From the NCBI GenBank assembly GCA_965235115.1, contig OZ249436.1, positions 55,676,001 through 55,740,000 of the forward strand: a DNA stretch of 64,000 nucleotides. Reading direction: 5' to 3'. The position numbers and the translations under genes were made by a program. The notes under the pieces are model-generated. The model was not told the DNA's origin, did no database searches, and saw nothing but the letters and a program-made list of their open reading frames with translations. This DNA is from Laetmonice hystrix. Its lineage: Eukaryota. Shown in pieces: positions 14,301 to 60,190 of this stretch (its first letter is position 1; every line of letters starts with the position of its first letter).

Positions 14301-15049
14301 TGATCGGTTGCATAGACAGGAAAATCCGTACTGTTATAAGCACCTCAACAAAAGTAAGTTCCCCTCTAAATAATTGGTCACATTTTCCAAAGTATCCACC
14401 ACAATGCGATGTTAATTGCAGGATATGATATGACCTCTATGGTGCCATGTGTGAAAAGCACAATCATGGCATCTTTCAGTATACTCTGCTGTAGTACATG
14501 ACCCACACTACCAGTGAAATTCACTGTTGAGGTCTTGGTGAACCATTTTGTTATTTTTGAAACGAGTCATTTTTCATGTAATTGAGGTTTATTCATGCGT
14601 AACAATAGGTATGGTCCTGTCCTTCTCACACATTGTCCCTATGACCATGCATGGTCACACACTGCAATTATTTAGGGGGAAACTTATACTTTTGTTCAGG
14701 TGTTTAGTTTGCGGCCTTTTGTTTTCCGTAGAGAGAAATACATATCGAAGGAATGTAAATTTTGGTATTGCTTAAGTGAAGTATAGACTGGAATACGTTT
14801 AAGTTTCAATAGTGCGTATAACTTGTCGTCCATCCAGTTCTTGTTATCCAGATGAACTTAAAAAACGACCTTCACTCGTCGCTAAAAGTGGGTGTATCTA
14901 CACACACTATACATAAATACTGCAACATGGGGAGACTGGAGAGACATCCACGTTCAGTTTGAAATAACATCTTAATTTTGTTGTTGTTGTCAGTTTTGAC
15001 TTTTATTCAGTACGTTCACCCCTGTTAACCAGCACACAGTTTGCGACTC

Positions 15050-15300
15050 AACTATTGCAGCCATTCTTCTGTGCATTGTCCTGCGATGACGCCGATCTTC
15101 TCTCGCCGTGGTCTTTCTCGGCCGACCACTTCTGTAAAACTTTCTCTTGCCTGATGTTCTTGGTACCTCTCCAATACCCGGTAAACTGTTTGGTAGCAGC
15201 AGTGAAACCATCTGGCAATACTTTGGACGAAAATACCTTCCTCTCCAAGGCAGATTATTTCTCCCCGTTCTGCATTTGTTAGATCTCGTACTTCTGGCAT
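15050..15300 (-). mobile_element. Tc1/mariner transposase N-terminal (HTH) remnant with a frameshift
   Basis: MPEVRDLTNAERGEIICLGEEG..SIARWFHCCYQTVYRVLERYQE, then after a frameshift SGKRKFYRSGRPRKTTAREDRR. This is the HTH and GRPR layout typical of Tc1 transposases. The catalytic DDE domain is absent. Confidence 0.85.
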
Positions 15301-16437
15301 GGTAACACCAAAGCGAACGTCCTTCTGCACTCTGACCAACCAACGAGACTAGACAGGTCTGTCTAGTCTCGTTGGACCAACTAAGAGTTCCATACGACTT
15401 TTATACAACACACCTTGACATCTAATGTTTAATGTGAAATTGACAGGACACCGTTGAATGTGCGCCTCTAGTATTACCGAGAACTTCTAACGAGGGCATG
15501 TTGCAATACCATGTTGTCTAGTGAGTGTATTTACTATCAACGATATATTTAGACCTGAAATAATCAGTGGTTAATAAGCAACGGCTGTTTGTAAAATATG
15601 TAATTTCCCGTGACTCTCAAAGTAGGGGAAATAAGTAAATATTGTACGAATTGAATTTAATAACAAAGTCAATAGTATAAAACAAAAGGAAATTTACTAG
15701 TTATTTCCTTACAGCGTTAAACCGAATGTTCCATTGTGGCTTTTTTCGAAATATTTGTACGGCACATACTTTCACTCAAGTATGATCTCACTGGCCAGTT
15801 ACTTTGATTTATTATGAGGTGCCAGCTGCTATCTTGTTCGATGTCGATGTAATCACGGCTAACAATCCCAATTACTGAATCGGCGTCGGTCTCTCCTGAA
15901 GGATATAATCTTACGTTCAATGGTTGTGTTGTCTTAGTTACAGGGAGCTGATGTCGAAAAGTCGACATGATTATACACGTAATTGGCCGGTATGGGCCTT
16001 GACCTCAATGACCACTTTTGTGGCTTTCAATATTTACAGCAAAGAAATAAAACACCGTCTTAATTTTGCACTTTTTAGCGCTGTACATGATGTAAAATAA
16101 AAGAAAAAAGAAAACAGTGCTACTATAATATATCATATAGCAATGGGAATTTGCACTTTATGCCTCACAAACAGCCAAAGGTTAACCATGACAAGAGCGA
16201 CAACAAGGAATTAAAGGAAATTCTCACCAATTGTATTTTAATTTTTACTGTTTTCTTTTCCTCAGGTTATGGGTGCGTGGAGTGCGTGACGCCAGGGCGG
16301 ATGCTCGCAATGCCAGCGTGTTCCTGTCTCAGTCACGGCCACACGTACGGGCCGACCAGCCTGCTGCGATTTCTCCCGCCTCACTATTCACCAGTCACCC
16401 GCAACCAGACCTTGACCCGACCCAGCACGGACCCGCC

Positions 16438-18735
16438 ATGCAGCCTCCTTCCTACGGAAGCAGCCTCCAGAATGCAATAATGTCACGTGGGTGGAATGGA
16501 GGGAGCCGGATGCCGGTGTACCGCCCCTCCACCATCATGGGCGGTGTTGGCGGACTGGTGCCGCCTCCGCCCACCTCCACTCCGGTCAGCATGGGGCGGG
16601 CCCTGCCCGCAACAGTCATCCGACAACATTCTCAGCTACAACAGCATCAGCACCAGCTTCCGCCCCATCCCGCCCATTCACGACTGCCAACCAATTGCTA
16701 CATAAGACCGACACACAACAACGGACCCAGCCTCCAACATTTACGATCAGGGGGTCAGCCACCCACACCCCCGGCCCAGCCCAGGACTGTCTCTCCCAGT
16801 GCTCTTGTTTTACAACCAAATAATGTCTCCAAAGGTCAAAGGTCATCCTCCTCCCCTGTTGACCCTAACCTGGTTACACGAATTGATGGCGCCAGCGAGA
16901 AGGGTATATTTGGCTGGACCACGGTCGATGGAGTTAATATACCTTTCCTGTTTAGAGATAAACAGAAATATTTAGCAGTGCGCATGGTAGAGATGAAACT
17001 GCTTTCTAAGTATCCAAGCACTTACCCAGATGAACTTAAAAAACGACCTCCACTAATGAGTCACTACATCACAGAATCGGAGTCCAAGCTCTTGAATGAG
17101 ATCAACATGGACCATTGTGCTGGCGAATATGGCAAACATCCATTCGTCACTCAGGACCTCATTGTAAAGATGTCCGACTTTGAAGACTTCTATACCATAG
17201 TGAAGAAACATTTCCCGCCAAGTCTGCTAGCGCAATTACCTGCTAATCAGGTCGTTGAGAAAAAGGCAAACGGTGGCTGGGTTCAGATTAACAACACAGT
17301 CGTGCCCTATGTTGTTAGGGGCAAGGCTAAGTACGTGCCACTGTCGGTGATTCGTTACGCTGCAGGACTTCTTACCGACATTAGGGTTGGTGGCGAAACG
17401 TGCACTGAAGAGGAGTGTAACTTTCTTAATGAAAGCTGCAAGGCAGCTGGTGTAGACTTTAATTTCAAGAAAACTAACAAGTTGGTTATGCTTGATGTGG
17501 TCCAAAGACTCTGCAGCAACACGCTGAATATCATGGAGCTTCCCAAGGACGATCCATTCAGCCAGGCTGAATTCCAGGCATTACCTGAGGAGGAAAAGCA
17601 GGAAGATGCTCTAACAGGTGGCAGCATGTCGCTTTCCACAAGTCAGATGCCTTACCCTGGAATACCAATGTCGTCTGCGGTACCCACAAGTCGTACCATA
17701 CAAAATGGGGCTGGCATGCCATCGGCCGCGGCTGGGGGCCCGTCTGTAGGCACCCCACAGCAGCAGCAGCCTGGCATCATGCCCCCTGGAGGACAAGGGG
17801 TTCCATACTGGATGAACCAGCACCTTGGGATATATCCTGGCATGCAGGGGGGATTCTCAGGGGGCCCTCACACCATGCGTGGTCCAGGAAGACCTCCCCT
17901 GGCAACGCTGCACCACCAGCCGGGTCTTCCACCACACATACAACCACAACAACAGCAGCAACCACAACAAGGACAGTTTGGTAGCCAGCCCACAAACACT
18001 GGAAACGCTGCAATGCCTGGTCGCAATCCAAACCTAAGCGTTCACCTTCCCCTGAATGGTACAAGTGCACAGCTTCCAAAGTCGGCAGAAGTCAACAACA
18101 ATTCGTATCTAAATGCCCACCGCGACCAAGGAAGCAGGAGACAGTCACAGGAAGCTATGGACCTCACCAAAGACAACGCCAGTCCTCGGGAGAGAAAGGA
18201 CCTGAGCAACCCGCCCACCCCATCAGGGACACCGCTCCACAGAACGCTGTCAGCGTCCTCCCTTCCACAGGCATCTCCTCCTGTGAGTCGTGCGGGAAGT
18301 GCTGGGTCCACGGGACATCAGCGAACCACACCCGATGGTTCTCCTCAGATCCTGCTCCACCAACAGACCGCCCCTGGCCCCACCGCCCCACCAACGGCCC
18401 CCACGGCCGCAGCCTTCACTCAGCCCACCATACAGCTGGGCCCTGACGGCCATCCCATACTCACCAGCACCACACCAGTCCCTCCTCCGGGCCACCCCGG
18501 CTGGCATCCTATGATGTCCAACCCGGCCGAGTACCAGAAAATGGTGCAGCTCATGCAGCTTCAAGCGATGGCACAGCATCAGCAACAGCAGCAACAACAG
18601 CTGCAACAACAGTTGCAGTTGTTGGAACATCAACACCTACATCAACAGCGAATGAAACAGGAGCTGGCCATGGCCAAGATGTCACATCGCATGATCCGGC
18701 CCGAAGGTCCTAGACAGCCCTCGCCAATGCAGCAG
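16438..18735 (+). CDS. Gene 1, first coding exon: large uncharacterised Pro/Gln-rich protein with two putative Ski/Dach-like domains (full CDS join 16438..18735,20207..24685; 2258 aa)
   Basis: Lies within an 840-codon open frame. The acceptor ttttcttttcctcag| precedes 16266, and the first in-frame ATG (cccgccATG) is at 16438. The phase-0 donor CAG|GTAGTT at 18735 matches the phase-0 acceptor at 20207. Folded-looking blocks at about 16912-17214 and 17272-17517, poly-Q near 18575-18650. Confidence 0.88.
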
Positions 18736-20206
18736 GTAGTTTGCTTCTTGTGATTTCCGACGGTAGTATTGTGGGCAATATGGGAATAGTTTGTGTCAGT
18801 ATTTAAGGATTGATGAAGTAAAATATCATGCTGCAGGGCTGCCGATAATGGATATTACATGTTTTTTTTCTGAATCTCAGAGCCCTATTAAATGTTTTTC
18901 TTGTAAGCAAAGACAACAACAACTATTTTTTCAGAAGGTGTTATAGGTTATTTCTTTATACTTGAAATAATTGGCTCTCAATTCTTTAGTTAATTGTATA
19001 AATTATAGATTTCTGTCAAGGAGAAAACCTGCTGCCTGCATGGATATAATTGCTTTTCATCTCATAATAACGAGCCATTTGCCACATGTTAAAATGAAAT
19101 TAAACATACATTGTCTGCAACAGCTGATATCGATTAATCTTCGCCAACTGCGTTCATAGTTCCAAATAAACACACAGGCACGCAAACAGACAAAAAGAGA
19201 AAACACGATTTAGCTGAGAATGTAAAAGCAAGATGACAGATAAAGCAATTTATTGTGTAACTGACGCCAATTTCGGATATTGAACAGACCTACCTATTCT
19301 TACCGGTACTTTTTACATAAACGATAGAGATGGAAACACACTTTTCTTAAATCCAGTGATTTCTTTTTTGCTTTGATATCGGTCCTCTATACACGTACTG
19401 TCATAACCCCTGACTTTCGTTGGTTTTACGAAATGCCTTTTTAAAGCAAACATTGCTTCAGTACTTTAACCTGTTACAAACAGGTTTAAGCCGGGGATGA
19501 TATCAGTGAGGGACAATATCCAGTTACAATGTATATGAGTGTAATTGATTATAGAGTCGTGCTTTGCCAGGGTTTAAACAATGCTATAAGACTCCGACTG
19601 TAACTGGTTGTCACCCGGTTCACCACGTCAGCAGCTTGTACGTGCCTCCGTGCCTAAAGTGTTTCTATACGTGGATTGAGATGGGTGGGGTTGGGGGACT
19701 ATAGTAATTGTCATTGGTACATTTTGACATTAGCAGAGGCAAGAACATTTCCTGGGTCTGACCCTGGTATGTGGGTCAGTAGTTCCAAACGCGATGCTTC
19801 CATGTGTGTCAGTAATTCGCGTCATATATGACGTTGTGCAGCGTGACTAACATGTTTGGAGGGGAATAATAAAAACTGACGGATGCAGTTATTTATTAGA
19901 ACACATTTACATTATTAAACTACAAATTAAAAATCACAGTTAAGGAAACGATAGAAAACGAGTATGAGCGAAAGTCTGATAAATTGAGATTAAAATCGTA
20001 CCATTTTCGACTGGGCCCAAATTAATCAAACAAAACAGTAAACTGACCTGAAATAATATAGGCTTGTTTTGAGCGCTCAATCCTGTAATCAGGAAGTGGG
20101 CTATGATGGCCAGCCTCCCGAGACCAGTCTAGTGGGACATAACACACTTCTGTAGTCCACTTCTCTACACGTGTTTGCATGTCATCTTTTGTTTCTTGTC
20201 TTGCAG

Positions 20207-23200
20207 ATGATTATAGCTCGAAGTCTTTCTAATGGGAATGCACCATATACGACATCGAATGGTGTGCCGGTGGTTGCGTCAAGAGGTCCTGTCAGTACGC
20301 CCCCAGTACAGTCCACATCCAGTCAGAAAGAGACGTCTTCCCGAATAGAACGAAAGGAATTCCAGGGGAAGACTTTGTCGTGTCTTGTGAAGGAAGATGG
20401 ACATTATGCTCTTGTTGAGGCGTTGTCGAGGGTCTACTTTCCATACTGCTCTCTCGAGGACTTTCAGTTCGCACTTGAAAAACTTTTACAAGTGCCTTTG
20501 GTCAGACTTACCCAAGATGAAGAGAAATCATTTATTGCCTTTTACAACATACCAACGAAAACCCTCATGTGTAACAAAGTGATAAAGTTATCCGAGTTCA
20601 AGGACTACATTCCACAGTTAACATATATGTTTACAGAGAAAGGTGGCTATAAAGATGGTGCAGCAAGGGATGTTTCTGATTCAAACAGCAGCAGCAGTAG
20701 CACAACAGAAGATTTCAGAGGTGGAACCAAGGTAATAACAGAAACACTTGGTAAGAAAATATCTGCTGCTTTGAAAGCTCAATTCGGAAAGCGTCCTTCA
20801 TCTACAGATCCAGAAAACCCCGATGGCTCTGAAAGCCCAACTCCGGCCAAACAACCGCGAGTGAGTCTAGAAGAGGCAGTAAACCGACTGAAACAGTTCC
20901 AGGCAGAGCAGAAAGGCAGGCGTAAGGGATCGAGGCCAGCCAGGCGGATTGGATCCCAGTCTCCATCGAGTGATTCTCCCACTGAATACTGTGCCCGGTC
21001 ACCTGCCCTTGATGGCTGTTTGACCGACGAGTCCACAATTACAGAGCCCATGATAGGCGCTGATGACATGGATGAAAATATACTCGTTGGCACCAGCAAT
21101 GAAACCGTAGTTGAACCATCCGAAGTGGGTACGATGCAAGGAACTGAACCAGCTGATGTCAGCAGTGGGCAGGCAGTTCTAGATACCGAGATTGGTAGTG
21201 TGGAGGAAAATAAAGTAGCTGAGATAAGCATTGTTCAAACAGTCGGACATTCCGAGGTGGGTAATGTGCAAGTTATTGCACCTATGCAAGCGGGTAGTAT
21301 GCAAGAAGTTGAGCCAACCAAAGTTGGCGGTATGCAAGAATCTGAACCTAAAGCGATGAATAGTGTACCAGACGTTCAAGCCACACATGTAGGATATATC
21401 CAACCTCTTGATTTTACAAAGGTTGACAGTATTCAAATAGATGACCTAGAGGATCGTAGTATGCATGCAACGGACTCACTGCACGAGGAGAGCATGCAGG
21501 CAACCCCACCGACTCAGACTGACAGTCAACAGACAGTTGAATATTCGCAGATTAGCGGTATGCAAACAGTTGTACCCACACAGTTTGACGGTGGAAAGGC
21601 AGTTGAAGAAATGCAGGACATCCTACCAGAAGTCACTGAGGTTGTGAATGTACATCAACAGACGCCAGACGGCAACATGCAGGCAACTGAACCTACAGAA
21701 ATGGACACACTGTTGGAATCAGAGCCTTCATGCGAGGAGAGCCCTCCAGAACTACAAGAAGGGAAGGAGCAGGAAGTTGATTGCACCCATGGAAACGTTT
21801 TCCCTCCGTTAGGTGAGGATATCAAGCAGGCAATTGAACCGTCATCGATTGACAACATGCAAGGCGATTCTCTTACATATGAAGGCAATGTTATCGGTAA
21901 CTATAGCAGTGATGAACCACTTACGTCAGAGGTTAGGTTATGTAATGAGGCCATTCCACCAGTAGAGGCCCAAGGTAATATCGACAACCAAACTGACGAA
22001 AACAATGACGCAGTACCCGAGTGTGGCTTAGAAGGTCAGCCAGATGAACAGCCTAATTTCGAATCAGAACAGACGGAAGAAGTTGAGCACAGAACTACCT
22101 GCAAAGATACAATGGATAACTTTACAGAGACCTACCATGTTAGAGACAGAGAAGACGCAAGTAATGCCCCTAGCGTGCCAGTCCAGTGTTATCCACATGA
22201 CCGTGGAGTCCCATCGGGATGTTTTGAGGAGGATGGACCTCCTCCTGTTTCTGGAGAGGAGAAGACAGTGTTTGAGGAAGGGAACTCCGAGGGAGATCTT
22301 GATGACACAGACCAGCCAGGGCTTGGTCCCAGTGAAAATTTGGAAGAGATAACTCCCAATGGTATTCCTGCATTTGAAGACCCAACCAAGGAAACTCAAG
22401 AAGAAACATGTCATCAGCCTGGAGATTCAGTTGCATTAGTTGGACAGGACACAACAAGCACTGCATATGCGCCTGGTCCCGAGTCAGATTCCCAGTATGC
22501 AAGTTGCGTTGGGGGAGAATCAAGTTCTGCCGTGCTAATTACAGAAGAGAAAACTCTCAGAATGAATGTTGAGCCGTTGCCAACCATCGCAAGTGAACAA
22601 AACGTTTCAATGCAGGCACCAGAGAGCGATGTGAAAGACGTGGTTTCTGATGACACAATCGTTGGCCAAGCCTCATGTTACAAGAAGCCTGACACATATA
22701 TGGATGATGATGATTCAGGGCAGATCTTTAGAGACCTGGCAGCTGGCCACGTGGGTGCATCTGATTGTCCAAATCTTGGCTCTGGTGCACAGAAATTGGC
22801 AGAGGGGCAGGAACATGAACCCACTGACCTTATTTGTCTAAACCGAACAGAAGATGATGGGAAAGAAAAGCAAGACGACGAACACGCCACACAGACCACC
22901 ACTGATGTAGACCCTGATCGTGACTGCACAGCAAACTCCTTGCCAGCTCCTTCAGATCGGAGTTGCATTTTAGGGCTGTTTGGACTTGATGCTGCCAACA
23001 GTCCAAAAGATTTTAGTTCAGATGCAAATGATGAGGAAGATGAAACTACCATTACAACATTCTGTGGAAGTTATGTAGAACCAGGTGAGAGTAATCCAGA
23101 CGTTCAGCAAGATCCCACTTTATTGCAGTTAGAGTCCACAGAAACGTCGCCGGAGGAAGATATCCCAGGACAAATAGAATCAGGACACACTCTACAAACA

Positions 23201-24685
23201 GCTGGAAATATTGATATGTTAACGGGGGATTCGACGGAGGTAAAACCACCCCTGCTGCCCATGCATGATCGGGAAACTGGAGTAGAACAGAATATCATCC
23301 CAGATACGTTTGAAAGTAACGACCAACATTCAGAATTCGATGCAATGGAAGCGCAGTTTGACCAGACAGAAGGTAATCTTCCTGAAAGCCAAGCTTCCAT
23401 CCCGGCAGTTGCTGTCAAACAAGTAGACCCGACGCCATCCATGCCACAAGATCTCTCGAATAAAGGTGAACACGAGGCACCTCCTGGAGAATGTAACAAT
23501 GGACCATCAGTTGCAGAGGATCGCGGGGACAGGTCTGTGGAAGCAGAAATCCCAGCGCCAATGCAGACCGATATGAACCTAGACTCAGGTACGACCCAAG
23601 TATTGGAGCACGACACCGATCGACTTGAGGTAATGGATACTGATGAATGTTTTCAACAAAATGATGAAAACAATACAAATGCATCTATTGACATATCAGG
23701 TGTCGACGAGGAGCATGATGGAAGTGGCGTAGATGATGGCCAGGCAATGGAGGTCGATATAAATATTGGTACATCGTTGGCTACAGAAAGTAGTACGGAT
23801 CCGTTGCCGCAGGATCCGATTGAAAAAACTGTTGAGAGCCGTTGTGATAGCACTACCATGAGAGATGCAAGTCTTTTTAATTCCGGCATAGACATAAGTA
23901 CCCAAAATGCCATCTCGTCAGTTTCTACTGAATCAACGGTGGCAGATGATCAGACTGACCACGTATTAACAAATGTCACAGATATCCCAACGACATGTAC
24001 CAAGGAATCTAACACATACAGTCTTGGTTATGAGGATGAAACCCTTCCAGAGGAGGGAAGCCACTCGCAGGAGAATCTTGAAGTTGATACCAAGTTACAT
24101 GAAACGGACAACAGTCAGATTACCATAGATCAGTATCCTGTAACTGTACAAGCAAAGAGTAGTACCGTTGAAGACACAAAAGTGGATGTAGCGATGCAGG
24201 GAGACGAAGTTCCGTGTAATTTGCACAGTGACGATACTCTGCCGGAAGTGGAAGAGGTAGCTAGAGATTGTTCAGATAGTACGACAAAAGATGTTGATGA
24301 TTGTCTTCCTGAAATGGTTAGTGATAATCCAAGTGGAACAAATTCCGAGGGTTTCATTGAAAATGTACATGTAGATGTAGTTCGTGAGCAAACAAACGAA
24401 ACTGTGGAAAGTGCTTCCAAACCCATAACTTCTCCTGAGGCTTGCGAGACTGGTTTGTCAGCTACTGAGGAGCAGACTCCGACTGGTCTTAGTCAGGCAA
24501 GTCTGTTTGTTGAAATCACAGAAAAGTCAGTAGACGATTGCAATTCTGCTCCGGGAAACAGTTCGCCAGCAACAAAAGATATCACCCCTAATGATCAAAG
24601 TAGCATATCTACGCCAGAAACATCAGATTGCGTTCAGCCTAAAGATTATGGATGCAAGGACGTTATCGCTGAGGCTGATGTCTAA
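20207..24685 (+). CDS. Gene 1, last coding exon: third putative Ski/Dach-like domain, basic patch, 11-mer repeats and long acidic tail
   Basis: 1504-codon open frame. Acceptor ttttgtttcttgtcttgcag|ATG ATT at 20207 is in frame with the upstream exon. Stop TAA at 24683-24685. Confidence 0.9.
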   Translation: MIIARSLSNGNAPYTTSNGVPVVASRGPVSTPPVQSTSSQKETSSRIERKEFQGKTLSCLVKEDGHYALVEALSRVYFPYCSLEDFQFALEKLLQVPLVRLTQDEEKSFIAFYNIPTKTLMCNKVIKLSEFKDYIPQLTYMFTEKGGYKDGAARDVSDSNSSSSSTTEDFRGGTKVITETLGKKISAALKAQFGKRPSSTDPENPDGSESPTPAKQPRVSLEEAVNRLKQFQAEQKGRRKGSRPARRIGSQSPSSDSPTEYCARSPALDGCLTDESTITEPMIGADDMDENILVGTSNETVVEPSEVGTMQGTEPADVSSGQAVLDTEIGSVEENKVAEISIVQTVGHSEVGNVQVIAPMQAGSMQEVEPTKVGGMQESEPKAMNSVPDVQATHVGYIQPLDFTKVDSIQIDDLEDRSMHATDSLHEESMQATPPTQTDSQQTVEYSQISGMQTVVPTQFDGGKAVEEMQDILPEVTEVVNVHQQTPDGNMQATEPTEMDTLLESEPSCEESPPELQEGKEQEVDCTHGNVFPPLGEDIKQAIEPSSIDNMQGDSLTYEGNVIGNYSSDEPLTSEVRLCNEAIPPVEAQGNIDNQTDENNDAVPECGLEGQPDEQPNFESEQTEEVEHRTTCKDTMDNFTETYHVRDREDASNAPSVPVQCYPHDRGVPSGCFEEDGPPPVSGEEKTVFEEGNSEGDLDDTDQPGLGPSENLEEITPNGIPAFEDPTKETQEETCHQPGDSVALVGQDTTSTAYAPGPESDSQYASCVGGESSSAVLITEEKTLRMNVEPLPTIASEQNVSMQAPESDVKDVVSDDTIVGQASCYKKPDTYMDDDDSGQIFRDLAAGHVGASDCPNLGSGAQKLAEGQEHEPTDLICLNRTEDDGKEKQDDEHATQTTTDVDPDRDCTANSLPAPSDRSCILGLFGLDAANSPKDFSSDANDEEDETTITTFCGSYVEPGESNPDVQQDPTLLQLESTETSPEEDIPGQIESGHTLQTAGNIDMLTGDSTEVKPPLLPMHDRETGVEQNIIPDTFESNDQHSEFDAMEAQFDQTEGNLPESQASIPAVAVKQVDPTPSMPQDLSNKGEHEAPPGECNNGPSVAEDRGDRSVEAEIPAPMQTDMNLDSGTTQVLEHDTDRLEVMDTDECFQQNDENNTNASIDISGVDEEHDGSGVDDGQAMEVDINIGTSLATESSTDPLPQDPIEKTVESRCDSTTMRDASLFNSGIDISTQNAISSVSTESTVADDQTDHVLTNVTDIPTTCTKESNTYSLGYEDETLPEEGSHSQENLEVDTKLHETDNSQITIDQYPVTVQAKSSTVEDTKVDVAMQGDEVPCNLHSDDTLPEVEEVARDCSDSTTKDVDDCLPEMVSDNPSGTNSEGFIENVHVDVVREQTNETVESASKPITSPEACETGLSATEEQTPTGLSQASLFVEITEKSVDDCNSAPGNSSPATKDITPNDQSSISTPETSDCVQPKDYGCKDVIAEADV

Positions 24686-58712: not shown

Positions 58713-59784
58713 GTTCGTTCTGCTCCCAGCCACATCCTCACATTGGGAATCGGAATTCTGAAAAGGCCACAGCACATGGGCCTGGTTGTCCTTGATGATT
58801 AGATCTATAACATTATATCTCATATATCTGGGACAAAGGTATAAAAAGAAATAACTGGAGCTCCGACATGCTCCACTTGCTGACTTCCATTGGCCAGCAA
58901 CAGGTTTTTTTCACAGTAAAACACATATTGATGTCAAACTGGCTTGTGATAGTCTTCAAAATCTACAGTATGTCCCCCAAAAATTATAGTCTAACTTTAG
59001 GTGTGCAATACACTTAGATATTTTAGAGGATTGTCGAATTTTGAATTTTGAAGTTGAAGTTGAACATAACGTTTGATCCCCATAGATAACTCTCAGCAAG
59101 TTTGGTGTTGACAGGGTCACGCATTACTGATCACAACCAGTATCTCTTTTTGACAATGGAACAAAGACTATCATTTTTTCGGAACATACTCTAGTTAGTG
59201 AGAAAGTAAGCGTCCTAATGTGCCCAAACTCGGAACGTACCATATTTTTAAGCACACATAATGTATCTGAGCCTTATGTTACAGTGCTGATGAAGAGATC
59301 CACTCGATCATATTTGGCCCAATTCAGGTGTAAAATCTTACCCTTAAAGAAACCAAATCAGAAATGCATTTTCTGTTGTACTGCATTTTTTTTTATAAAG
59401 GGCTCAGGGAGGTATTGTACAGGCATGTAACATATGTCTATCCATACTTCAATAATTGCACCGACTTAGATAAACTGCATGGCCCGTATGCATAAAAGAG
59501 GTATAACTATACTTTGGTTTAACCAAAACCTGATTTAGTTATTTCTCTGTCCCTAGTGTAAGAAAATTTAGCTAAACCATCTTCCTGCATAAAGACACTT
59601 ATGCCGGGTGTAACTATAAACCGCTGGGTTTCTTGAACTATTTATGCCTACTGCAAGACACACTATACTGTGATCAGAGGTCGTTATCATTTTTTTACTG
59701 GCTTTATATAAGATTAATGTAAATTGACCGTTGGTGCTTCACTTTTTACAGAAAACAAAATAATCTGTAGTTTTGGTCCTGCAG

Positions 59785-59906
59785 GAATCGGTTACAGCCA
59801 GCAGAACGTATCAGGAGGTCGACGGTGCAGCACGGTTAAGGCTTACCTCCGACCTGCCATGAGTCGTCCCAACCTTCACGTCCTCACGTCGGCCCTCGCC
59901 GTCAAG
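59785..59906 (+). CDS. GMC oxidoreductase exon 5
   Basis: (G)IGYSQQNVSGGRRCSTVKAYLRPAMSRPNLHVLTSALAVK. Confidence 0.93.
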
Positions 59907-60022
59907 GTCTGTCATCCACCCTCATATAGTCCAGGAATATGGTCCAAAGTAAAACGGCCAGTTTCTTTTTTACTTGAATCCTATATGACCCCCAGTAGCC
60001 CTTACATGTTATATTTGTTTAG

Positions 60023-60190
60023 ATACAATTCGAGGCACGTCGCGCTGTGGCGGTGAGATATGAGCATGACGGTGCAGAGAAGGAAGTGCGCGCCAGACGG
60101 GAAATCGTCGTATGCGCAGGTGGCATCGAATCACCCAAACTTCTCCTGTTATCTGGAGTCGGGCCGCGAGAACAGCTCGACCAACTTCAT
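60023..60190 (+). CDS. GMC oxidoreductase exon 6
   Basis: IQFEARRAVAVRY..REIVVCAGGIESPKLLLLSGVGPREQL, the second GMC signature; CAT|GTAAGT donor. Confidence 0.95.

Follow-up and report, generated by a model that had tools for sequence, protein, structure and literature searches.

A protein of Laetmonice hystrix with three predicted domains of the Ski/Sno/Dachshund fold, a putative invertebrate family of chromatin or transcription regulators

Background

As co-regulators, Ski, SnoN, Dach, and Skor have a central place in TGF-beta/BMP signalling and in organ specification, and each of them carries one Dachshund homology domain (DHD), whose winged-helix fold has an additional helix inserted into its wing. 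Here we describe a gene of Laetmonice hystrix that is predicted to code for three domains of this fold, D1, D2, and D3, in one protein of 2258 amino acids (aa). The gene lies in a stretch of 64,000 nucleotides (GenBank assembly GCA_965235115.1, contig OZ249436.1, positions 55,676,001 to 55,740,000 of the forward strand), which was analysed as a whole and is called the window; all nucleotide positions below are counted from its first letter. An earlier note on this DNA had proposed that the gene codes for a triplicated Ski-like transcriptional regulator.

DHD-like domains, including the solved ones, have been described as confined to metazoan chromatin-associated proteins, and the N-terminal winged helix of SMARCB1 has been described as DHD-like (PMC4509781). 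The DHDs of SKI and SnoN are near neutral and have a conserved, flexible groove that has been read as a protein-docking site, and the DHD of DACH1 has a positive face that has been linked to DNA binding (PMC2944819). DNA binding has been described for the domains of both DACH1 and SMARCB1 (PMC4509781, PMC2944819). SKIDA1 has one DHD and an EPOP-like C-terminus that binds to Polycomb repressive complex 2 (PRC2), and the ancestral SKIDA1 gene has been reported to have arisen in early vertebrates (PMC8864842).

Results and discussion

Predicted fold of D1, D2, and D3

AlphaFold2 models were built with family alignments and gave a predicted local distance difference test score (pLDDT) of 91.1 and a predicted template modelling score (pTM) of 0.67 for D1-D2, and a pLDDT of 89.9 and a pTM of 0.79 for D3. 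D1 (aa 149-263, positions 16882..17226, plus strand), in which the pLDDT is mostly above 90, and D3 (aa 815-911, 20351..20641, plus strand) both begin in the models with three strands and two helices, after which come a strand, a helix, a further strand, and a last helix, while D2 (aa 277-377, 17266..17568, plus strand), which has a conserved ELPKDDPF tail, has the element order of D1 minus the second helix. When the Protein Data Bank (PDB) was searched with Foldseek, the first 12 matches for both models were SnoN (3eq5), SKI (1sbx), and DACH1 (1l8r), all with probability 1.0, and D3 aligned to these with a template modelling (TM) score of 0.72-0.80 and a root mean square deviation (rmsd) of 2.2-2.7; taken over all comparisons of D3 with DHD structures, the rmsd is 2.2-2.8 over ~95 residues. 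A structure search of D3 with VIA, which is independent of Foldseek and covered 48,161 chains, gave DACH1 and SnoN again. In this search D3 matched DACH1 with a Z of 12.4 and an rmsd of 2.2 (95/99 residues aligned) and SnoN with a Z of 11.5, the next entries being at Z 7.8 and 6.9. In a VIA alignment of the D1-D2 model, D1 (model residues 4-124) matched SKI, SnoN, and DACH1 with Z 10.0, 9.8, and 9.6, respectively, over 94-104 residues. D2 alone (model residues 150-229) gave Z 5.0-5.8 to the N-terminal winged helix of SMARCB1 over 73-80 residues. Among the AlphaFold models of Swiss-Prot proteins only Ski, SnoN, Skor, Dach, and SKIDA1 rose above noise and, therefore, no human or mouse protein in that set resembles the D1-D2 tandem.

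The models show the beta-beta-beta-alpha-alpha-beta-alpha-beta-alpha order of a DHD-like winged helix and they superpose on solved DHDs. As judged from these models, the three domains carry the Ski/Sno/Dachshund winged-helix fold, with D3 as the most canonical of them and D2 as a trimmed, DHD-like copy of D1. The call of Ski/Sno/Dachshund-like domains in the earlier note was thus upheld by the AlphaFold and Foldseek comparison that it had suggested, in which DHD structures came out on top for D1 and D3.

One carrier of the fold was not expected. A doublet-microtubule protein of Chlamydomonas (PDB 8glv, chain Le), which is not a chromatin protein, has the DHD-like fold in common with D3 (Z 7.8, 91 residues aligned). 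This match could mean that the family shares the fold and has a role away from chromatin, such as that of a scaffold in the cytoplasm or the cytoskeleton, and huge acidic tails, one of which is present in the window protein, occur in non-nuclear proteins too. We regard such a role as improbable, given that nuclear co-regulators make up all of the closest structural relatives, that a high-mobility-group (HMG) box is fused to the abalone orthologues, and that Q/P-rich regions and KR-rich motifs would be typical of nuclear regulators.

Relation to known DHDs at the sequence level

The Pfam profile of the DHD, PF02437 (Ski_Sno_DHD, gathering cut-off 24.5 bits), gave weak or sub-threshold matches in 7 of 42 D3 orthologues, the best with an E of 2.5e-4, and was the top family by count. 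ESM features also placed D3 nearest to PF02437 clusters with a score of 0.88. None of 80 D1-D2 segments was matched by PF02437. A six-frame search of the whole genome with this profile recovered one Dachshund and two Skor/Corl-like loci, namely, L001 (G000:C4:23.16 Mb), L002 (C1:44.72 Mb), and L003 (C1:29.49 Mb), and not the present gene; no separate Ski/Sno locus was returned by the search, the locus counts being lower bounds. In the Skor-like genes of the genome the DHD is followed by a Smad4-binding-like region with a CxxC...H motif. When the D3 profile was compared by hhalign with the three canonical DHDs of the genome (Dach, Skor), an E of 0.0016 was obtained in register over 83 columns, with FCLVEA opposite ICLPQA and the loop cysteine aligned. 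The family consensus of D3, FCLVEA and LPV..LKCNK, aligns with ICLPQA and the ..RC.. loop of Dach of the genome, the P and Q of CLPQ not being kept. The same comparison with D1 and D2 was not significant, and in these two domains the groove motifs, CLPQ where helix 1 starts and the P....C loop ahead of the last strand, are both missing.

In sequence searches of the PDB the best match to the D3 profile was to designed proteins with tetratricopeptide repeat-like repeats (E 3.7e-5). This match was dismissed because it is the sum of four very weak repeat matches, each with an E >70. Matches to thermonuclease, SNF2, and DLG4 in these searches were at noise level.

Compared with the DHDs of SKI and SnoN (1sbx, 3eq5; PF02437), the window protein has the same alpha/beta winged helix with a helix inserted in the wing, the domains of its family have the same near-neutral net charge, and D3 appears to keep the ISC strand motif, the CL..A with which helix 1 starts, and the P...C loop. 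It differs in that it has three such domains instead of one, falls below the Pfam threshold, does not keep CLPQ, and has neither the SAND-like Smad4-binding domain (PF08782) nor, as judged by Pfam, the C-terminal coiled coil of Ski. PF08782 was absent from the window protein and from the scanned orthologues, and so was PF15223, the C-terminal region of EPOP/SKIDA1 that binds to SUZ12/PRC2. Since there is no Smad4-binding domain and no EPOP region, the protein is not a member of the Ski/Skor or the SKIDA1 family. No other single structure matches D3 as well as box-N of DACH1 (1l8r), but the two are only 12% identical, no second Dachshund box was found in the window protein, and D3 has no net positive charge; the link to Dach is that of the DHD fold only. 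The N-terminal winged helix of SMARCB1/INI1 (5aj1, 6lth_M; PF21459) is the best solved match for D2 alone, but its Z is only middling, PF21459 touched just 1 of the 80 D1-D2 segments with an E of 0.11, and the window protein has no SNF5 core.

SKIDA1 has to be considered separately, as the window gene might be the invertebrate counterpart of this vertebrate PRC2.1-associated protein with its DHD multiplied. Both proteins are long and mostly of low complexity, SKIDA1 has the highest sequence identity to D1 among the Swiss-Prot structural matches (20-22%; for the mouse protein the rmsd is 3.5 over 104 residues), and a SKIDA1 cluster of the ESM Atlas aligns over model residues 16-244. This origin is nevertheless very unlikely in our view: the EPOP-like C-terminus is missing, as described above, PF02437 covers SKIDA1 and yet matches no D1-D2 segment, and separate clusters with a DHD and an EPOP region are present in Cnidaria, so that the SKIDA1 lineage looks distinct. 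The ESM Atlas cluster in question is commonest in Cnidaria and has Ski_Sno_DHD (84%) and the EPOP C-terminal region (19%), which suggests that SKIDA1-like proteins predate vertebrates. This observation runs contrary to the early vertebrate origin of the ancestral SKIDA1 gene (PMC8864842).

Origin and conservation of the three domains

D1 and D2 had been noted earlier to repeat each other and this proved to be correct, with a BLASTP E of 4e-6 within the window and, by profile-profile alignment with hhalign, a probability of 98.4% and an E of 5.5e-15. D1 is also related to D3 (hhalign probability 81%, E 1.2e-5), and the alignment runs end to end over 97 columns. Direct comparison of D2 with D3 by hhalign gave no significant match. 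Since D1 is homologous to D2 and to D3 and there is no significant match of D2 to D3, the arrangement is that of a tandem pair and a distal copy and not of three domains in tandem. The spacing is in line with this: the linker between D1 and D2 is 13 aa long and D3 lies 437 aa downstream. Hence, of the three tandem domains that had been described, three related blocks were found and the word tandem holds for D1-D2 only. The best explanation is that D1, D2, and D3 were all derived from one ancestral DHD-fold domain.

To assess conservation, 33 full-length orthologues from other phyla were aligned with the window protein. Long conserved stretches among them are limited to D1, D2, and D3, to which a short motif near aa 986 can be added. 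Mean identity to the window residue is 55% for D1 (aa 149-263), 53% for D2 (aa 277-350 and the tail 362-377), and 43% for D3 (aa 818-911). The earlier description of such blocks in an otherwise disordered-looking protein holds as far as the blocks are concerned, while the disorder of the remainder is suggested by composition and low conservation.

Range of the family

When 1.84 billion representatives were searched by phmmer with D1-D2 as the query, 521 matches were obtained at E<=1e-3, 96 of them below 1e-30. Among 150 representatives that were scanned with the family HMMs, 70, including those of a spider, a whitefly, and flies, have the order D1-D2-D3; the others are for the most part D1-D2 models, which in many cases are short and probably fragmentary. 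A tandem D1-D2 followed by a distant D3, the arrangement by which we define the orthologous group, is therefore present in this family. Identity to the nearest relatives is 89% in D1-D2 (P0194) and 74-82% in D3 (P0001). Orthologues were recovered from molluscs (Haliotis, Octopus, Pomacea, Gigantopelta, Mytilus, Ostrea, Elysia, and others), annelids (Owenia, Paralvinella), a brachiopod (Lingula), and arthropods (spider, millipede, whitefly, Papilio, and many Diptera, among them several Drosophila species, Aedes, Anopheles, Musca, and Glossina). The length of most orthologues is no more than 850-1000 aa. Within Diptera and Lepidoptera, D1-D2 of a tephritid fly is 75-100% identical to that of mosquitoes and Papilio and this argues for strong constraint. 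In a tree of D1-D2 the arthropods are set apart from the spiralians with full support and the window sequence falls among the spiralian sequences, without resolution there. The best explanation is that the family is old, vertically inherited, and invertebrate, and that it is defined by the fixed order D1-D2-D3, in which D1-D2 form a rigid tandem pair and a long spacer of low complexity separates them from D3.

Pfam found no domain in the window protein or in 14 orthologues from other phyla, the abalone HMG box excepted; the fly, mosquito, butterfly, Lingula, and Octopus members gave no Pfam domain. The HMG box (E 3.6e-15) is N-terminal and lies upstream of D1-D2-D3 in the Haliotis orthologues (residues 14-82 of P0013), and it was absent from the other scanned orthologues. 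It could be a real fusion or could come from a merged gene model. For an HMG-box exon in the window the best tblastn E was 2.8, and no coding open reading frame (ORF) was found upstream.

All named orthologues are called 'uncharacterized' or 'hypothetical' or have misnomers that go back to low complexity ('mucin-5AC', 'histidine kinase L', 'pqn-41'). Literature searches with SKIDA1/DHD terms and with six orthologue identifiers returned no paper on the family; the CG number of the D. melanogaster gene was not covered by them, and a fly study under a CG number possibly exists. The RefSeq label 'uncharacterized' on the Drosophila orthologues argues against an already named gene. The names, the Pfam result, and the literature thus agree with the earlier statement that the gene matches no named family.

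Matches to D1 or D1-D2 were also present in the AlphaFold database (AFDB). The short D1-D2-like ones include accessions that we take to be from aphids (J9K5W3, J9JW02, J9JM68, X1WYG7) and from rotifers. There are also D1-only matches that are presumably nematode entries, one of them named DUF4158, and one entry is named FLYWCH. These matches hint at lineage-specific duplication or recruitment of the domain.

The names of these two entries, together with the presumed aphid and rotifer origin of others, would also fit domesticated DNA-binding modules of the KilA-N/Bro-N/APSES type, of viral or mobile-element origin and not kin of Ski/Dach, and the N-terminal domain of the P22 antirepressor, Bro-N clusters, Mbp1, and a domain of granulovirus Orf22 are among the weaker structural matches. 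Such a source is hardly credible, however, when those matches (TM 0.56-0.61, Z 3-5.4) are set against the ones to DHDs (TM 0.72-0.80, Z 10-12). Moreover, the gene is single-copy, the tree follows the arthropod/spiralian split, and the D3 orthologues match PF02437 and not Bro-N.

Proposed function

Since the protein has three domains of the Ski/Sno/Dachshund fold it is probably a chromatin or transcription co-regulator. The reading to which we lean is that it is a nuclear, chromatin-associated adaptor or transcription co-regulator, the near-neutral DHD modules of which dock partner proteins. The median net charge across the family is 0 for D1, -1 for D2, and -1 for D3, and this matches the neutral SKI and SnoN surfaces that have been read as protein-binding (PMC2944819). 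The near-invariant residues of D3 fall in the two segments to which the groove-forming parts of canonical DHDs align. In the mechanism that we propose, the DHD modules would dock their partners in the groove made by helix 1 and by the loop joining helix 3 to strand 5, the most conserved residues of D3 would sit in this groove, and the Q/P-rich spacer, the short helix after D3, and the acidic tail might add multivalent contacts that vary with lineage. The HMG-box fusion of abalone was counted in favour of a role in chromatin or transcription.

The main rival is direct DNA binding, in which the protein would be a sequence- or structure-specific transcription factor in which one or more of the DHD-like winged helices touch DNA, as has been proposed for box-N of DACH1 and shown for SMARCB1/INI1. 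D3 is closest to DACH1 (Z 12.4) and D2 to SMARCB1, and DNA binding has been described for the domains of both (PMC4509781, PMC2944819). In addition, the 148 aa at the N-terminus are very basic with a pI of 11.9, the segment after D3 is basic, and the fused HMG box of the abalone orthologues would suit a DNA-binding protein. The domains, however, are near neutral family-wide, unlike the positive face of DACH1 (PMC2944819), and the basic flanks are not conserved across phyla, for which reasons we consider this rival unlikely, though less so than the others discussed here.

Several points weigh against a co-regulator with protein-docking DHDs. PF02437 gave no match, even at E<=10, with exon A, exon B, or D1, D2, and D3 singly. 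Sequence searches of the PDB with D1-D2 and with D3, whether single-sequence or profile, returned no SKI or DACH chain, and the matches of D2 to solved structures are middling (Z 5-5.8). The co-regulator function of the family is a prediction from the fold, and the fold alone does not fix function, as can be seen from the Chlamydomonas axonemal protein (Z 7.8) and from the use of the fold on DNA by DACH1 and SMARCB1. Nuclear localisation is suggested by short basic motifs only, and the assignment of residues to the groove, which comes from sequence alignment and not from superposition, is likewise putative. Of the triplicated Ski-like transcriptional regulator, then, the three DHD-fold copies stand and the regulatory role is still a prediction.

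Gene model, splicing, and expression

Two plus-strand ORFs, 16231-18753 and 20171-24685, dominate the gene region. Exon A (16438..18735, plus strand) has 766 codons from the ATG at 16438, the first in-frame one, to a GT donor. Over 750 aa its identity is 75% to P0194, a protein of a closely related species that has the same ...MQQV ending. Exon B (20207..24685, plus strand) has 1492 codons and a stop, and equivalent ORFs, P0001 and P0002, are present in related species. The intron between them (18736..20206, plus strand) is 1471 nt long and has GT..AG ends, with the donor CAG|GTAGTT at 18735/18736 and the acceptor TTGCAG|ATG at 20206/20207, both in phase 0. The joined product is 766 + 1492 = 2258 aa, and the ORFs and the splice phases thus bear out the two-exon protein of the earlier note. 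In the closely related species the products of exons A and B were called separately, as P0194 and P0001; the source given for each is a contig of 118,536 bases, which we take to be one and the same. The C-termini of the window protein and of P0001 are similar, which indicates that the stop at 24683-24685 is real.

Four public runs, all from one sample, hold the locus. Three of them are genome-like and cover the intron, while the contigs of the fourth, X4 (58 million letters of contigs), are exonic only and leave the interior of the intron without coverage. One X4 contig of 333 nt lacks a segment of 1471 nt that has GT..AG ends, and its junction corresponds to 18735|20207. We read X4, the library kind of which is not on record, as derived from complementary DNA and, on this reading, the junction for which RNA data had been called for is confirmed and the gene is expressed. 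It is single-copy in the 627-Mb genome. These results establish a genuine, transcribed, single-copy gene.

The 5' leader within the first coding exon is 16266..16437 (plus strand) and has no in-frame ATG upstream of 16438. Since the first X4 contig begins at 16277, just past an AG acceptor at 16264-16265, an upstream non-coding exon probably precedes the exon with the ATG. The leader contains an upstream ORF of 6 codons (16269-16289, ATG GGT GCG TGG AGT GCG TGA), which is out of frame with the ATG at 16438.

Regions outside the domains and neighbouring sequences

A middle region rich in Q, P, S, and G (aa 378-766, 17569..18735, plus strand) follows D2 and contains a Q-rich, helix-like stretch (18526-18693); it is conserved with the nearest relative and not across phyla. 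Within it, a CAG/CAA repeat (18573-18617, period 12, ~3 copies) codes for polyglutamine. In the DNA runs, additional 31-mers of high depth are concentrated on this repeat, which may therefore vary in length or recur elsewhere.

Downstream of D3 there is a cluster of motifs (20786..20947, plus strand), identified by comparison with orthologues, that consists of a basic GKRPSS, a helix SLEEAVNRLKQF (20864-20899), and a basic patch KGRRKGSRPARR (20912-20947). The KR-P and helix motif recurs in Haliotis, Gigantopelta, Pomacea, Lingula, Ylistrum, Potamilus, and Paralvinella, the helix being RRLEEMVQRLKQ in abalone and SRLEDAVNRLHQ in Paralvinella. The basic patch had been put forward as a nuclear localisation signal; it is present as described but is kept only in the two nearest relatives and is thus lineage-specific.

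The C-terminal tail (aa 1031-2258, 20999..24682, plus strand) is very acidic, its 1228 aa having a net charge of -218 and a pI of 4.05. Identity to the nearest relative is 18-32% from aa 1067 on compared with 72-78% for aa 767-1066, and the tail is a lineage-specific, fast-evolving expansion. It has no tandem repeats, the polyglutamine repeat being the only one found by the scan. Many spiralian orthologues end in V-[IV]-x-L-D (VIVLD, IIILDD, VICLD, VICID), which may be a SUMO-interaction motif, and the C-terminal DVIAEADV of the window protein (24659..24682, plus strand) is possibly a degenerate remnant of such an end.

Elsewhere in the window, two overlapping ORFs on the minus strand (14990-15343) have a helix-turn-helix-like stretch (..LTNAERGEIICLGEEG..IARWF..YRVLERYQEH..) that we take to resemble the N-terminus of a Tc1/mariner transposase, and this is presumably a transposon remnant upstream of the gene. 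On the plus strand an ORF at 59724-60056 with ..GGRRCSTVKAYLRPAMSRPNLHVLTSALAVKV.. looks like an exon of a GMC oxidoreductase.

Conclusions

The fold itself is known, while Pfam has no annotation for the family, for its triple-domain architecture, or for the D1-D2 sequence family, and none of the three was met with in the literature that was searched. We would give roughly even chances to the broader view that D1-D2-D3 proteins are an ancient and strongly constrained family of chromatin or transcription regulators in spiralians and arthropods, and maybe older, which has no human or mouse member in Swiss-Prot and was missed by domain databases and by genetics, and that the D1-D2 tandem is a new DHD-like sequence family. 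A distinct family with three DHD-fold domains would then join Ski, SnoN, Dach, and Skor, which have one DHD each, and two new domain models would be defined. Hundreds of gene models that are now 'uncharacterized' or misnamed would gain a structural and functional handle and, because there are single clear orthologues in Drosophila and in mosquitoes, the function of the family would be testable at once.

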